DNA of 59,594 nucleotides, the filler included, from Platydemus manokwari (taxonomy: Eukaryota), in the NCBI GenBank assembly GCA_037951405.1. It is 6 parts of 6 records of this genome, joined end to end, with 100 filler letters (N's around TTAATTAATTAA, not from the genome) between each part and the next. Parts side by side here need not be neighbours in the genome. Positions count along the whole stretch, not along the records: positions 20,961 to 29,584 come from JBBMOY011350538.1; 5 more parts are not named here. One strand, given 5' to 3'. Below, piece by piece: positions 20,961-29,584 of the stretch. Every line of letters begins with the position of its first letter. The first letter of the stretch is position 1. The position numbers were made by a program, and so were the translations under genes. Under the pieces are notes generated by a model that ran no database searches, was not told the origin of the DNA, and saw only the letters and a program-made list of their open reading frames with translations.

Positions 20961-21620
20961 TTAGAAATTTAGCTAAATGTTTGTGTATAAAATAAACTTA
21001 TAAATTAGTTATGAACCCTAGTTGTAATATCAATTTAATGCGTTTTGGAAAAAACTTTAATGAATGTGGTTGTCGAAAATTCTATTTCATTTTTCATTAA
21101 ACAAAATAGACTACCACATTTGATTGACTAATAACATGTAATATATAGCTATATTAAATTAAAGATTTTTATTATCTTTATTCAATTTTTACCATGATAT
21201 TATTATTTCGATATCATTGTTGGATATGAAATGATATCTTTTACACCATACCAATGTAATGTAATTGGGTATCAATATTAGCGTGCACTGAATATATATA
21301 ATTACAAATGCTGGAAAATTATTTAATTAGTTTATGTCTTTTTCAGATATTGTAGTAAGGTTTAATATTATAAAAATATCATGGAATAATTCTTATGTTT
21401 TACACTTAGAAAATATCAAAATGGATGATAATTAATTTAAGTAACATTCATAAAGTTTACATATATAAGGATTTAGCAATTAATTATGATTACTTTAAAT
21501 CTTTTCAGTTTATTTATACATTTTAAAGGGGTTAATTGATATTTCAAATTATTTTGATTGAATTTTAACTTTGTTTATATAATTAATCCTTATTGTGTAA
21601 ATTTTAAATTAAAAAACTAA

Positions 21621-24600
21621 ATGTCTGAGGATAGCTTTGTTATTACTTATAATGATCGAAGTAAAATAACTTAATTAAATGTAATATTTTATTTTATCTT
21701 TAGCCAATTTTCAAACATTAACTGATATTTATGAAAGCTGTCACAAACTTAAAAATGAGGTTACGCTTTTGAGGAAAAAAAATATTGAACTTGAAGGTGA
21801 ATTAGTACAACAAAAGAATCTCAATTCAGTATAAATCATCATGTAATGTAAGACTTATTTTTTATTAGGTAGTAGATCGTAAACTTCAAAGAGCACTCCA
21901 AGATGTTGAACATTATAAAATGAAGAAATTAATTGAAAAACCAGCAATTGTTGTTACCAATGATGAATCAATGGATATTGATTACGATGGTATTTATTCG
22001 AGCAATGAAGAAAGTCTTAAGGTGTACAAATTCTTTAAAATTATTTTTAATGATTAGATCCAGAAACAGTTATCTTTAGAAATGATGAATTGTGAATTAG
22101 AACATAAATATAAAGAATTAGAGCAAAACAAATTCGATTTACAACAAGAAATTGAAAACATGACCATCAAATACGATAATCTCAAAAATTCTCATGATGA
22201 ATTGAAATCATTTGTGGAAAGTAAAAAAGCCGAATTATTAGAATTGAATGATTTGAAAATGAAAATAAATGTATTGAATGAAATGGTTTGAGGAAAGCGT
22301 TAATAATCTGATTGTTTACATTTCAGGATTTGGAAATTTCATCGAATAACAATGGAAATTGTGAATCTAGTATTTATTTAAGTTTAGCCAAAAATGATGA
22401 ATTGCAAGTAAAATGTTTCAAATTAGAAAACGAAAACAAAAAATTCAAGTAAGTATTGAATGAGATTATTTTTATTTATGTTTTATAATGAATTTTTTAA
22501 TTATATTTGCTTTGAAGTGGAAAGTCTCGATATTTTTCGTTAAAAATTAATAGATAGAGGAGTTTTAATCGTAACAAGATTTATTTTTCGAATGATTTGT
22601 GATGAATATTTTAACATTCTCGCTTGTTGATTGTGATTCAGGAGAATTAAAACAAACCCGGTGATAACTTTTTTGTTTTTTTTAGAATTTTATCATAATT
22701 TTATTTATCGATTTTATGGTTTCATTTAAACATAAATCAATACCCATTTGTAGATCTTGTTTCCTCTTGCCATTTTCCTCCAATGAATTTCCATTCTCCC
22801 CACCTCACATCTGCACAGATCTAAATTTATTCCAATAATTCATCTATATTTATCACAATAAACCCTATTTTAAAATGATATTTTATTCATTCACAATCAA
22901 CCAGATCATTTATTTTATTGGTTCTCATTGAAATGCGATTATAAATATTGATTTTATTTTTTTATATTTAAGTTAATTATGTTTTTTCATTTTTTTCGTA
23001 TTTTTTTGTTTCTAGCTTCAACCATATCGAGAAATATTCAAATAATTTCGAATGTTGTTCTATCAATATCAACCATAGGTTTATAAGATCTTAATTAGAA
23101 ATCCATTCGAAATGATTTATTCCATTTGATCTCACTGTAAGACTTCATTTTTTATTTCACTGCTGGTTATGTTTGGTTGGCTGATTTGATAGACAAAACA
23201 TGGTATTCGCTCTCGTTTCATTTGGTGATGTATTTTCGTAACTTATTTAATGTGATCAAACATTTATCTTGCTATAAATACACATTTTACTGTCCTGGAT
23301 GAGTAGTCTGATTGAAAAACTAGCTATTCTGATATTTCTAATAAAAATGTTTTCCTAATCAGATTATTTAAAAATAAACAAAAATCCAATCTCTGCACAT
23401 TCGAATTCAATTGATATCATGTATTTTATTTTTTGTAAATATTGATTAATTAAAATAGCAAATGTAGTTAAATCTGATTGGCTGTCGTGTCACCAATTAC
23501 AAAAAAACAACTCAAGGTGGATTAACAGTTCTTATTCGATTGGTCACGAAGTGATTTTTAGTTAAATGTGAATTGAAAATAGTTATTTGTTGTATTTATA
23601 GTTGCTATCTCAATTTAAACTGTTATTAATAATATGATAATAAACTCGATTGATATGATTATTATTATTTCTGGTATCGATGATGTGTTATTAACTGAGC
23701 TATAATATAATCATTATTGATATCACATTTCTCAACACAAATTGATCTAAAAATATATCATCTTTGGATGAAAATTACCTTTCTAGTAGTGCTATTGTGC
23801 CATATTATTTGTTGGAAATAATAATTCATTTAATCAGAATATAAAACATGTCATCTCAAAGCAAAACTTCTCCAACAATTTGATCCGAAATTATTGGAGT
23901 TCTGTGATGACAGATGTTTAATGATCTGAATTGATAATATATTTTAGGATATAACTTAATATTTGTTTGATTTATAAAGTGACTGTGATAGTATAAGATA
24001 TTATTGGATCTTTCTGTTGAGAAGATAAACATATCTTCATCATAATGACATCGACACTCGATTTACAGAGATTTTACATATATGGAATCGGTTAATGTCA
24101 ATAAATATTTTACAGACACAAATAGAAATACTAATAGACATTCTGGTGCCATTTCTATGACTGTTGTAATTAGATATTTTTACATTTGATAAAAATAACA
24201 AAAAAGATGTCCTTTAGCATTGATTTATTTTCAATTTCAACATTATATTCTACATTTTATATTACTATTTTTTCAATTATTATTATTATATTTATTATTT
24301 TTATTAATCATAAATTGATGAATTTTTATCAAAGATATTTTTGGGGTATTTTTCGACCATTTTCAGATCATCATTTATTATTATTTTATTTCCAATAATA
24401 TCGATCAGTAGCGGGGGATATGATTTATTTAACAAATGAAATATATATATGGCCTCATCATTGATTATGATCTTTATGGATCAATGAGAAATGATGTGAG
24501 AATCATTTGGAATTTTCTGTCAATTTTTCTGTTATTTTAATCCCTGATCATGGAGAATTGATTATCATTTATTTGAGCACATCAAGCAGCACCTTTTTTC

Positions 24601-27112
24601 TCCATCAAATGTTAATGTTTAAAACAAAATAAAACTATTTCCGTGGTTTATTTTGTGGCCATTTTATTATTATTTATTTAATGCTTTCAACTGTTTTCAT
24701 TGGTTTTTGACAATGATTTATAATTCTGTAGAGAGAATCACATGAATTTATTGTTATTAGTTGAAGAGAATACATCTCTGATTAATAAATGTGAAAGATT
24801 AGAGGAGAGATTGATCGAATATGAGAATCAAACTGTGATCATCAACAATCCCAATGATTGTTTAAGCTCAATGAGCAATGTTTGATTTATTGTTTCTCTC
24901 ATATAATGGTGTGTTTGATGGAGTGTTTTGTTTGAATAGGTTCAAGATTTAGCAGCTCGTAAATCGCGTCATCTTGAACGGGAAAACGAAATCTTGAAAT
25001 CCGAACAAACACAATTATTGGAAAAGAATTCCGAATTTGTAGCAAAGATTAATTTATTGAATCAGAAAATGTGTGCTCTCAAGCAAAGGGATAACACGTT
25101 GCAAGCACTTTTCGAGCAGAAAAATGAGCAGATTGAAATGATAAATAGCGATTATCATTATTTGACGAGAGTATGATATTGATGATAGCGAGATATATAT
25201 GACGAGATTTGATATCAGGAATGTGAGAGCCTTAAAAAGGTTTTATTTCAATTTTCCAATCAAACATCACTCGATGAAGAGAGCGTCACTGAATTGATTG
25301 GTAATTTGAGAGAATTATACGATTTAGTTGATGGTCATCAAATCACCATTCAACATCAACGGGCTGTATTGGACGATTTGACCAATGTTGTCAAATCTCG
25401 ATTGGATCAATTGGATAAAAATGGTGCTCAATTTTCATTCGAAGAAGCTCTTTCTGGTGATCGGAAAATGATTATCGAGCTCCGACAACAGGTGGAACAT
25501 TTACAGGACGAATTGGAAAAGAAGACGGCTGTATTGAATGGATTGGACAGATCAAATCGAATCGAGAACATTGCCATTGATTCTTCAATGGAAGATGATA
25601 ATGTGGCTTGTCAGCATTATTACAGTGAAATGGGATTTTGTAAAGATGCAGGTGATTAATTATTGATTTCTCTCCTTTAATCGAAGGCGGGGCGAACAAA
25701 TATTTGGATTGATTATTTGGGGGGGGGGTAAATGTTGATATCGTGTCGAGATCTTATTAAATATCACTCGAATTGTTTGGACAAGTCAAGCATGGATTGG
25801 ATTGATTTTATAATAATCGGTGTGAATTTTTATTGATTTTTGTGCTTTATAAGAATCTTATAATTTGTTTTAATGGTCTCAATCAACCGTTCCATCAAAT
25901 CAACCGTATCAATAAACGCACCTCTGTACTGCAGTCAGATATCGATTATTCTTCTATAAAATGACAATTTTTAATATTGATTTTTTCTTTTGGGAGGAGT
26001 GGGTAAATGTTGATATAATGTCAAGATCTTATTAAATATTACTTGAATTGTTTGGTCATGTCATCAAGGGTTGTTTTGATTTTATAATAATCGATATGGA
26101 TTTTTATTGATTTTGTGCTTTATAAGAATCTTATAATAATTTGTTTTAATGGTATCAATCAACCGCGCAATCAAGTCAACCGTATCGATAAACAAACCCC
26201 TGTATTGCAGTCAGATATCGATTATTCATTTATAAAATGACATAATTTGTTTATATTTATTCTATATATTTAATATTGATTATTTATTTTTAATAAAGGG
26301 ACAAATATTTTTTGTTTGGGGAGGGGGGTAAATATCGTACCAAATATTATTGAATATCATCCATCAAAATCTTATTAAACATTGCTCGAATAGTTCGGAC
26401 ATGCCAACCATGGTGTTTTGTTTTTAAAATTGGACCGATTTTATAATAATAGGTTTTAATTTTTAATGATTTTGTGTTTTAATCTTATCATAATTTGTTT
26501 AAATGGTCTCAATCAACCGCGCAATCAAATCAATCATTTTTATCAACACATCTCTACAGCAGTCAAATATTGATTATTCCTCTAATCTGTCATACTTTTT
26601 TTAAATATTTTTAACAGAGAGGAACAAATATTTTTATTAATTATTTGGGGGTGGGGTAAATATCTTGTTAAATCTTATTAAATATTTTAATTCTTTTGCT
26701 CTCTATTTTCCTTTCTAATATTTTATTATCGATATCCATCAATACAGCACTCAACACAGACAATGAAAAAAATCGAAAAATATTCAAGAAACTCAGCAAT
26801 GATCTTTTGGAAGCTGTGAAAAAGATTTTCGGTTATTCTTTGGAATTAGGACCGAATGGATATTTTACGGTTCAGAGTTGTTTCGTTGAAGATTCATCTC
26901 AATTGTTGGAATTCAAAGTGGTCAAACTCATTGGTCAGTCCGGATTTTAATTGATCTCTTCATTTCAGATCGAGAACGAGCCAATTCTCATCGACAACGC
27001 TTACTCGTTATCGCTCAGAAAACAAATGGATTTCAAAGAGAACTTCCCGGCACTTCTGGCGAGCATTACTCTTGGTTTGATGGAGCAGAAATCATTGGAA
27101 TTTGTGTCATAG
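21621..27112 (+). CDS. MAD1L1: Divergent MAD1-like spindle-checkpoint protein, 10 exons, 597 aa: 21621-21660, 21704-21828, 21869-22021, 22058-22285, 22327-22448, 24732-24879, 24940-25170, 25219-25651, 26748-26917, 26969-27112
   Basis: All introns are GT-AG and phase-compatible, giving an open 1794-nt CDS. Long coiled coil. The C-terminus KIFKKLSNDLLEAVKKIFGYSLEL..YFTVQSCFVEDSSQLLEFK..NFPALLASITLGLMEQ aligns by eye with the MAD1 RWD domain (human [59 protein letters not shown]). The donor of intron 9 could be 26918 or 26921. Confidence 0.8.
25690..26690. repeat. Degenerate tandem repeat, unit about 280-330 bp, just over 3 copies, filling MAD1 intron 8
   Basis: Recurring G-run+GGGTAAAT..ATCTTATTAAA at about 25721, 25995, 26320 and 26648; GATTTTATAATAAT and TCAATCAACCG..GCAGTCA recur in the three full units. 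Confidence 0.85.
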
Positions 27113-29584
27113 AAATATATGTTTGTTTAGAATTCGTTTTTATGGATTTTTTATTTCACTTTCTTTCGTTGTGACTGAGTTTGATTTGGTTGTGCAATGT
27201 GTGTGTGCGAGTACCACCGATAGGCGAGTGGTTTTGTCATTGGAGTATCAACTGTTTACAAATCACACATGGAATCCCATGATGCCATAGATATCGATAC
27301 ATTCCAAATAAACAGAGCCAGAACCCCATTTTATGTTCATGTAATGTATGGCAATGCTCTGGATTTTTTGCGATGATTAATAGCCGACATCATTTTGCTC
27401 CAATCAGTGGGATTGTAGATTTTTTTATATAATTAGTTTACCTTATCACAATTGAGATTTTATCGACATGATCGTGGATAGATTTGAATGTAATTCAATG
27501 ATAGATGTAGTCGATAAATTTTTTATTTACTGTTGTTCCTTTGCTTAGAAATATTCTTCAAGACCAAATACTGTTTACAAGACAAATGTGTGGTGCATAT
27601 ATTATTATTCACCGATCGATATATTTTTATATATATTCAATCACGATACACAAAATATATCTCCGAGAAAATGTTACAATTCGAATTTATTATTTGAACT
27701 TATTATGTTCAGAGAAAAAAATATTTGTTAACATGGTCTGCTTAGGAAAAATTCAAGGCATATTGAATTTAATTGCCTAATACTGTGTTGTTCTAGTTTG
27801 AGACAGACTTCTCCGAGTGGACTGACGTTTTTTATGACTCTCCTTAGCATTGCGATAGGAATGAAAACGGCCGATAGAGCAACTTTATTGTCCAGTTGCG
27901 AGAGCTAATTAATTGAAGCTCGAAGCAGAATAATTCTCGTGGGGAGATCGTCAAGAAGTGTAACGAAATAAAGATAACTTGCTCGCTTCGCGGATAAGGA
28001 GTTATCTGGAGAAAAAAAATTAAAGATAAATTATAAAATGAATTTCACTTTTCATCAATGCGAGGCCTATCGATGGTGATAAGGAGTTCGTTTTCAATTT
28101 TCAGACCCCCCTCAATTAATGCTTTACTTCGATGACATTTGTTGGAATTATAACCACTGATTTTTAACTGCCGGAAAATCTACTCAGAAAAACAAACAAC
28201 ATGATGTCAATAAAAATGTAATGTCAGAAATAACCTTCAATAATAAAGCAATAAAAAAATCATTAAACGTCACCAAGTCGTAATGATCAACCATAAACAC
28301 ATCAGCAGACTTACTCGACCATATCCAATCAAGGTGTGTGATTTATATAAAACTCAACAAGTCGGTATGTGATTGTGTATTAGAAATGATATCGATTTCT
28401 CACGTATTCCTGGCAACAAAATTTATGGTACAACTTTAAAATCGTGAAGAATTTTCTGCATTTGGTGAAATATGGTAAAACAAAAATTATAATTTTCAAG
28501 TGAATATATAAGTAAAAACCTTGACAAAACCCGTTCACACAGCGATACGCATCAGCTGTTACAATTAAATACGTTAGACATCGTGGCTATATGGTCTCTA
28601 AGGTTTAATGCGAGTTTTATCGACAGGCTTAAGTGGTTTTCTTATCTATAATATATGGTGTGTCGTTTGTCAGCGATTTGTTTTCCTGTGTCAACAACAT
28701 CGGTAATTGACATGATGAGGATAAATTTTTGTCAAAACACGACTTTTATTTTGTTGAAATCCAAATTAGAAAATAAACGACTCTCTCTCGCTCTTTCTCT
28801 ATCTCTCTATCTCGCTTGCTTTGGTGTATGTTTTACTTTTATCGCATGTCTATATATGAGTTTCTCGCATGAACAAATTACGTCATAACTTTCATTAAAG
28901 GCTATATTAATAACGGTCATTTTGACAGATTGAAAGGTGTAGTTATTTGAGTTGGATACAAAAATATTCTATATACAATCACAATTGGTATTCTTATGCA
29001 ATTTCCCATCAACAGCCGATGATGATTTGATATTTTGTTTTCCCAATTCAAAATCGCATCTGGTCAATTACTGAAAAATCTTATTTTTTTACGATTATCA
29101 TTTTAAATATCAATGGCGTGTTAATGAAATCATCGGCTTTAGTCTGAGGTTGTTATGTGCTCGATCGATACCGATGAAAGAGGTCATTAGAATGTATTGA
29201 TTTATAAATTTATTATATGGACCAATCTGAACAAAAAATGAAATTAATCAATATATTGATTGGCACCTAGCAACGGATTCTTACTCAAATTAATAAATCA
29301 AAAGAATTTTGTCTGTGTTTAGCGATACTTTTTTCATTTCTTCAAGTCATGAAATTGTGAAGAAACCTCCATTAATGGTTATAATGGTTATATATAATGA
29401 ATTTCTATACATCAACCAATCAAGAGTATTATCAAACATATCAGAAGTTCCTTTTGCGTAACCCTGATTCTATTATTTCCATTTCAACCTAATGACATAC
29501 ATTGATATGGGATATGATGAATTTATGAATATGTTTGAAATGGAGTCTTAAAATGTCTTTTATTCGGTGTTGCAGTAAAAATGT

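Follow-up and report, generated by a model that had tools for sequence, protein, structure and literature searches.

The locus considered here raises the question of whether a protein that ends like MAD1, and carries neither the motif by which MAD1 binds MAD2 nor the motif by which it binds BUB1, can be the MAD1 of its lineage. The gene in question has 10 exons and lies on the plus strand at positions 21621-27112 of a 59,594-nucleotide window (the whole stretch of DNA that was analyzed), within the piece that covers positions 20961-29584. We find that it probably encodes a highly divergent MAD1 homolog without a functional canonical MAD2-interaction motif (MIM). The gene is most likely the MAD1 ortholog of its lineage and no longer a template for MAD2.

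The encoded protein, hereafter the window protein, is 597 amino acids long. Its first 465 or so residues are mostly helical and of the coiled-coil type, and they are predicted to be followed by an acidic linker of about 35 residues and then by a MAD1-type C-terminal domain (CTD), for which a stem helix, a four-stranded RWD-like head, two C-terminal helices, and a symmetric homodimer are predicted. An exhaustive protein search returned two relatives. The first, P0001 (575 amino acids, UniParc UPI00060499FF), aligns collinearly with the window protein, beginning at the MSED of residue 1 and reaching the C-terminal helix, and is 44.5% identical to it over 562 aligned residues. The second, P0002, is encoded on L001, a 1152-nt Logan contig (SRR33002330) of genomic DNA from a GC-richer species, with 51% GC in its exons and 36% in its introns; L001 carries exons 6-8 and is 50% identical to the window protein over 244 residues. 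A word-index protein search with exon 8, full-length P0001, and P0001 440-575 returned nothing or the query itself, and a metagenome scan with exon 9 found no relative.

The MAD2- and BUB1-binding motifs

The canonical MIM has been described as [RK][ILV]2X3-7P at a conserved position (PMC5579357). This pattern is not found anywhere in the 597 residues of the window protein, which contains only five prolines. The AlphaFold2 model of exon 8 (low confidence, mean predicted local distance difference test score [pLDDT] 56.4) places the end of its last long helix around residue 465, with pLDDT under 50 from there on. The expected position of the MIM, directly after this helix, is occupied by residues R463-S471, which read RIENIAIDS (25558-25584, plus strand). 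P0001 has a single match to the MIM pattern, KILGYTIEMGP, and this match falls within the folded CTD rather than at the MIM position. Neither a canonical nor a positional MIM was found in the window protein, at the MIM position of P0001, or in exon 8 of L001.

Could the window protein still work as a MAD2 receptor through a cryptic MIM? RIENIAIDS sits exactly at the expected site, right after the last long helix, and like the human MIM, KVLHMSLNP, it is basic at position 0 and hydrophobic at positions +1, +4, and +6. Furthermore, 14 lineages are reported to have both Mad1 and Mad2 yet no canonical MIM (van Hooff et al., PMC5579357). The stretch is not conserved, however: P0001 has HTANTAVDN in its place, and L001 has residues rich in Ser and Asp. 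Its second hydrophobic position is taken by Glu, it lacks a Pro, and even the relaxed published patterns fail there. We therefore consider a cryptic receptor site improbable, and RIENIAIDS would at best be a decayed remnant of a MIM.

The second motif was located by profile alignment against the human structures 7b1f and 4dzo, in which K501-N502-R503 of the window protein (26768-26776, plus strand) align with R617-L618-K619 of human MAD1, the RLK motif of the CTD stem that binds the phosphorylated CD1 of BUB1. The same columns read KKE in P0001. According to this alignment the BUB1-binding RLK motif is neither present nor conserved. The spacing of the two sites has changed as well, with 38 residues separating the MIM position from KNR in the window protein versus about 76 residues between the MIM position and RLK in human MAD1. 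By this comparison the helix and linker between the MIM position and the CTD are largely gone, with about half of the human length left. An earlier note on this DNA had suggested that the MIM is absent, that RLK is replaced, and that the coil between them is nearly gone, and our results agree with it on all three.

The C-terminal domain

What points to MAD1 is the C-terminal end of the protein. The tests of the window sequence were made exon by exon. The Pfam family PF05557 (MAD) was the best match of exon 9 (E 0.0023, 16.9 bits, profile positions 559-612) and the sole match of exon 10 (E 0.12, 11.1 bits, positions 622-659 of 661), and the two matches are collinear on the profile. A three-row profile made of P0001 455-575 and the two window exons (9 and 10) was searched against 177,635 PDB sequences. 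Human MAD1 CTD (7b1f, 4dzo) came first with an E of 0.097 and an end-to-end alignment, in which FPALLASITL of exon 10 is matched to a segment of the C-terminal helix of the human domain. In the PDB only this profile found MAD1; phmmer searches with exons 8, 9, and 10 singly gave no MAD1 match there.

Structural comparison was based on an AlphaFold2 model of the CTD that was built on the ortholog P0001, with the window exons entering as alignment rows only. The predicted topology is H-E-E-E-E-H-H (low confidence, mean pLDDT 57). The top four Foldseek matches of this model were all human MAD1 CTD (4dzo/7b1f, E 3e-4 to 5e-3, probability 1.00), while other kinetochore RWD proteins had an E of 0.4 or worse. 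VIA-align to the MAD1 CTD gave Z scores of 7.0 (98 residues aligned, root-mean-square deviation [rmsd] 4.9) and 6.9, versus 5.3 for the next match. When 48,161 representative chains were scanned independently of Foldseek, 4dzo took rank 1 (Z 6.9, 96 residues aligned, rmsd 4.6), and the next chain after the MAD1 CTD was an unrelated one with a Z of 5.5.

Language-model neighbors in the Atlas pointed the same way. The neighbors of P0001 470-575 were MAD clusters (0.89, 184 shared features). The first neighbor of exon 9 was also a MAD cluster (0.93, 193 shared features), and MAD accounted for 38 of the 100 matches of this exon. A Csm1 cluster appeared at rank 11 (0.79) in the exon 9 search, and no other sequence match of the Spc24/Spc25/Csm1 type was seen.

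A homodimer of P0001 455-575 was predicted with a score of 0.77, against 0.00 for the best control, a mark that is reached by 21 of 30 solved one-chain pairs and by none of 23 solved single chains. At least 70% of the contacts recur across three runs, the partner pLDDT is 74 or higher, and the predicted symmetric interface is formed by the stem helix and the last helix. We take this prediction to show likeness to the MAD1 CTD rather than binding.

Separate lines of evidence thus converge on the MAD1 family and on no other. The MAD1 CTD fits better than other RWD proteins by Pfam, profile search, Foldseek, VIA-align, chain scan, and Atlas alike, in line with the MAD1-type C-terminus that the earlier note had proposed. 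From sequence comparison and modeling taken together, the last 100 or so residues are read as a MAD1-type CTD.

A number of points weigh against this assignment and what we build on it. Both PF05557 scores, obtained from exon pieces, are below the 30-bit gathering cutoff of the family. Full-length P0001 has no Pfam MAD match at all, and a gene of this kind can therefore be missed. Each MAD1 signal is weak alone, with the CTD model at a pLDDT of 57 and all Z scores under 8, and the homodimer score may stem from the method having learned the solved dimer of this domain of MAD1. Outside the C-terminal 100 or so residues, no MAD-specific signal was found by Pfam, phmmer, or Atlas. P0001, likely a computed model, does not back the exon 8/9 junction that is discussed below in the way a transcript would. 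Finally, the anchoring and the partner that we propose further on are reasoned from analogy, and any particular partner is much less probable than the assignment to MAD1 itself.

Some of these points could be explained if the protein were not MAD1 and instead a different coiled-coil protein that ends in an RWD-type domain, such as the kinetochore proteins Spc24/Spc25, Csm1, or CENP-O/P, or a paralog restricted to this lineage. RWD kinetochore proteins do stand just under MAD1 in the structure lists (Z 4.4-5.3), and both the silent coiled-coil part and the subthreshold Pfam scores would be expected. The sequence-based methods nevertheless name MAD, and the MAD1 CTD came first in three structure comparisons. 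In addition, about 600 amino acids of coiled coil with a dimeric head at the C-terminus is the size and architecture of MAD1, while Spc24/25 or Csm1 have about 200 amino acids. This pattern of evidence makes a protein other than MAD1 highly improbable.

Intron 8 and the exon 8/9 junction

A divergent MAD1 could appear to lack a MIM simply because the gene model is incomplete, with a MIM exon or an alternative isoform overlooked in intron 8 or intron 5. Intron 8 (25652-26747, plus strand) contains about 3.3 copies of a tandem repeat of 276-354 bp at about 25694-26690, as seen with TRF and in the repeat families D1-D6. Four short in-phase stop-free segments between AG and GT are all that this intron offers, none of them MIM-like, and no MIM pattern occurs in it in any frame. 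P0001 reads straight across the 25651/26748 junction and is conserved on both flanks, with HY.EMGF.K[DN]A before the junction and ...K..IF after it. We regard the exon 8/9 junction, judged from these sequences, as well supported if not proven.

An overlooked exon would be easier to accept given that P0001 is apparently computed and wrong in at least one exon and that exon structure varies here, the matching exon of L001 ending about 18 codons earlier. Against this stand the decaying repeats that fill intron 8, the lack of any MIM pattern in its open segments, and the conservation in P0001 on both sides of the junction. We consider an incomplete gene model highly improbable, and the 25651-26748 junction without a MIM exon can be kept as the earlier note had drawn it.

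The repeat itself makes up nearly all of intron 8, which is unusually long and lies between the coiled-coil exon and the exons of the CTD. Its copies are 71-90% identical and decaying, and each unit opens with a run of G (GGGGGGTAAAT).

The caution about P0001 comes from one region. At about residues 209-255 it is Asn-rich and non-coiled, where both the window protein and L001 keep the exon 6 sequence ENHMNLLLL.EENTSL.NK.ERLEERL. Because this region is aberrant, P0001 looks like a computed gene model, probably misbuilt at exon 6, rather than a cDNA. The C-terminus of P0001 ends 7 residues before that of the window protein.

A short motif just N-terminal of the CTD stem, HY[YR][SE]MGF, is found at 25612-25638 in the window (residues 481-489) and at residues 467-474 in P0001. 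Exon 8 of L001 ends after SMEDSVDS, about 18 codons earlier, and the HY.EMGF element must therefore be in a later exon of that gene or absent from it. Canonical MAD1 is not known to have a counterpart of HY[YR][SE]MGF, which might serve this lineage as a docking motif in place of the lost MIM and linker segment.

Gene structure and conservation

The gene model was rebuilt independently from open stretches in three frames and GT/AG sites, and its exon boundaries were checked against the orthologous protein P0001. The rebuilt coding sequence is 1794 nt long, encoding 597 amino acids and a stop, and an in-frame TAA lies immediately 5' of the ATG. All nine introns are of the GT..AG type. Seven of them are mini-introns of 36-60 nt, and the other two are intron 5 with 2283 nt and intron 8 with 1096 nt. 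The piece at 20961-29584 is AT-rich (28.7% GC), and a spliced frame of 597 codons in such DNA is not a product of chance. The earlier note had described an intact gene of 10 exons and 597 amino acids, and our rebuild arrives at the same exon count and length. The peptide quoted there (DDNVAC...KNRKIF) corresponds to residues 475-506 and crosses the exon 8/9 junction as written.

All exons are on the plus strand. Exon 1 (21621-21660) holds the start codon and residues 1-13, including the MSED that is identical in P0001, and ends in phase 1 at a GTAAAA donor. Exon 2 (21704-21828, residues 14-55) has a GTATAA donor, and its end at 21828 fits the P0001 alignment ...IELE..V..NL. Exons 3 (21869-22021, residues 56-106) and 4 (22058-22285, residues 107-182) were both identified by tblastn of P0001; the former contains the conserved V[DE]RKLQ...LEHYKMK.LIE, and the latter is coiled coil with generic coiled-coil noise in Pfam. 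Exon 5 (22327-22448, residues 183-223) ends in phase 2 at a GTAAGT donor and is 61% identical to P0001 over 36 amino acids. Exon 6 (24732-24879, residues 223-272) has no P0001 counterpart, and its start is about 80% identical to the matching exon of L001. Exon 7 (24940-25170, residues 273-349) is coiled coil with RHLERENEILK conserved in both P0001 and L001, and it has the same intron positions as in L001.

The L001 introns are 59 and 49 nt long, compared with 60 and 48 nt in the window, and lie between the same residues. Exon 8 (25219-25651, residues 350-493) contains the end of the long coiled coil and then the low-confidence acidic linker, and it is 43% identical to P0001 330-477 (E 8e-20) and 42% identical to P0002. 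Exon 9 (26748-26917, residues 494-550) encodes the predicted CTD stem helix and the first strands of the RWD head, with 47% identity to P0001. Exon 10 (26969-27112, residues 551-597, stop at 27110-27112) encodes the remaining RWD strands and the C-terminal helices, with 59% identity to P0001.

The boundary between exons 9 and 10 required some attention, as the two exons are in one reading frame with a single TAA between them. The best-looking donor after exon 9, G/GTCAGT at 26934, was rejected since it is out of phase and has no in-phase acceptor. The frame for this reason needs the donor at 26918, AAA/GTGGTC, which is weaker and is the one used in the model. An alternative exon 9 donor, GTCAAA at 26921, would add one Val (598 versus 597 amino acids). 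P0001 reads LLEFK-ID.. at this boundary, which favors the donor at 26918.

Exons 4-8 gave coiled-coil-type noise in Pfam and Atlas, and long helices are predicted for them by AlphaFold2. The Atlas neighbors of exon 8 are generic coiled-coil proteins (CEP128, TNIP2, and the like). Because the coiled-coil body has no MAD-specific signal, the proposed orthology to MAD1 rests on the CTD together with the overall architecture. Two further, putative likenesses, of ECESLKKVLFQFS to a conserved central motif of MAD1 and of S592 to human T716, are not used as evidence here.

Identity to P0001 is 47% in the N-terminal 100 or so residues, 43% in exon 8, and 54% in the CTD. The CTD (47-59% in exons 9-10) and the N-terminal 100 or so residues (47%) are thus among the best conserved parts of the protein. 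Three divergent species keep the gene collinear and open, which argues for purifying selection as opposed to a chance frame or a pseudogene. That the gene is a decaying relic, a MAD1 freed from selection after the loss of MAD2 and now degenerating into a pseudogene, would account for the lost MIM, RLK, and 40 or so linker residues, for the high divergence, and for the repeat expansion in intron 8, but with a frame of 597 codons intact over ten exons, all splice sites present, and collinear conservation in three divergent species that is best in the CTD and the N-terminus, we give it almost no weight.

Other sequence in the piece

Intron 5 contains a 15-nt AT-rich tandem array at 24204-24389, with its core at 24255-24304. 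In a DNA run, the contig depth sums to about 35,000 over this array, where loose ends and false joints are numerous, and to 5-37 in the rest of the gene. The array looks like a low-complexity repeat that occurs genome-wide. The same run, which may be the source of the assembly itself, contains a contig identical to 21703-24305. Rfam gave no match on the piece at 20961-29584, and Pfam gave none on its six longest nonexon open reading frames. No gene, RNA family, or Pfam-recognizable open reading frame was found in the 2.5 kb downstream of the gene (27113-29584) or in the 0.66 kb upstream of it (20961-21620).

A possible role independent of MAD2

If the gene is indeed a MAD1 that has lost its MIM, then its product would be expected to act as a dimeric scaffold that does not depend on MAD2. 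Canonical MAD1 anchors at the nuclear-pore basket or the kinetochore corona. By analogy, the N-terminal coiled coil of the window protein may anchor it at either of these sites. The conserved CTD head would keep binding some partner, with CDC20 the most plausible candidate among the known ligands of this domain. The conservation of the CTD and of the N-terminus suggests that a CTD ligand and an N-terminal anchor have both been retained. That MIM and RLK are both absent agrees with a published rule, according to which loss of Mad2 is followed by loss of the MIM from Mad1 (PMC5579357).

A larger claim can be made if the DNA comes from a planarian or an allied flatworm for which loss of both MAD1 and MAD2 has been reported. 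MAD1 would then not have been lost; it would have diverged too far for standard detection, given up the motifs that bind MAD2 and BUB1, and been kept by selection as a dimeric CTD scaffold that takes part in the unexplained MAD2-independent, nocodazole-sensitive mitotic delay of planarians, perhaps through direct binding of CDC20 or cyclin B. We consider this chain of events, taken as a whole, unlikely.

The only signs in favor of the triclad source that the earlier note considered are the AT-richness of the DNA and the mini-introns. Should the DNA prove to be planarian, the statement that MAD1 was lost would become one that MAD1 was kept and uncoupled from MAD2, and the gene would be a concrete target for RNA interference in the study of an unexplained checkpoint-like response. 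In any lineage it would be a natural example of the coevolution of a protein and its motifs, in which MIM, RLK, and linker are lost and the CTD fold and dimer interface are, as predicted, kept. A standard Pfam screen misses P0001 entirely, which calls for caution with claims of gene loss. For now the interest of the gene is moderate, and it would become high with a planarian origin of the DNA.

Comparison with known systems

The closest known structure is the CTD of human MAD1 (MAD1L1; PDB 4DZO, 7B1F/7B1H/7B1J), which likewise has a stem helix, an RWD-like sheet, and two C-terminal helices. Residues 10-108 of our model align end to end with human residues 597-704, with a shared [FI]P.[FL]L.S.TL helix motif, and a symmetric homodimer via the stem and last helix is predicted. 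The window protein differs from human MAD1 in that the identity of the CTDs is only about 15-18%, KNR stands in place of RLK 617-619, and there is no MIM upstream. It is also shorter as a whole, at 597 versus 718 amino acids.

A second comparison is with the other dimerizing RWD-like heads that follow a helix, namely those of Spc24/Spc25, Csm1, CENP-O/P, and the KMN junction. These were second-tier matches (Z 4.4-5.3), and they differ from the window protein in scoring lower throughout, in being much shorter, and in having other partners.

The question of MAD1 in planarians has a literature of its own. In the passages of later papers that quote Grohme et al. 2018, planarians are said to have lost MAD1 and MAD2, with one account adding BUB1 and BUBR1; the same passages have other flatworms keeping MAD1/MAD2 and a nocodazole-sensitive mitotic delay persisting in planarians. 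The planarian lack of MAD1 and MAD2 is still stated in the literature up to a preprint of October 2026. MAD1L1 is, on the other hand, listed for the draft genome of Dugesia japonica among genes reported missing in S. mediterranea (An et al. 2018, PMC6114478). This claim of a MAD1-like gene in a planarian takes up a single line and comes with neither sequence nor motif analysis nor validation. Our literature search turned up no description of a flatworm MAD1 that lacks the MIM.

The likeness that bears most directly on our reading is to the MIM-less Mad1 of eukaryotes without Mad2. Species that lack Mad2 and have Mad1 never carry the canonical MIM, from which it was concluded that Mad2 is lost first and the MIM thereafter (van Hooff et al. 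2017, EMBO Rep, PMC5579357). A MIM-less MAD1 is thus a known pattern, to which the present gene would add another case. The earlier note had suggested that the gene could have been overlooked. The gene itself stands, and its novelty is weakened by the listing of MAD1L1 in Dugesia japonica (PMC6114478) and by the published MIM-less Mad1 of Mad2-less species (PMC5579357). Like those proteins, the window protein has no [RK][ILV]2X3-7P at the conserved position, and it differs from the MIM-less Mad1 of that study, which covered 90 species, in also lacking RLK and in scoring under the Pfam threshold.

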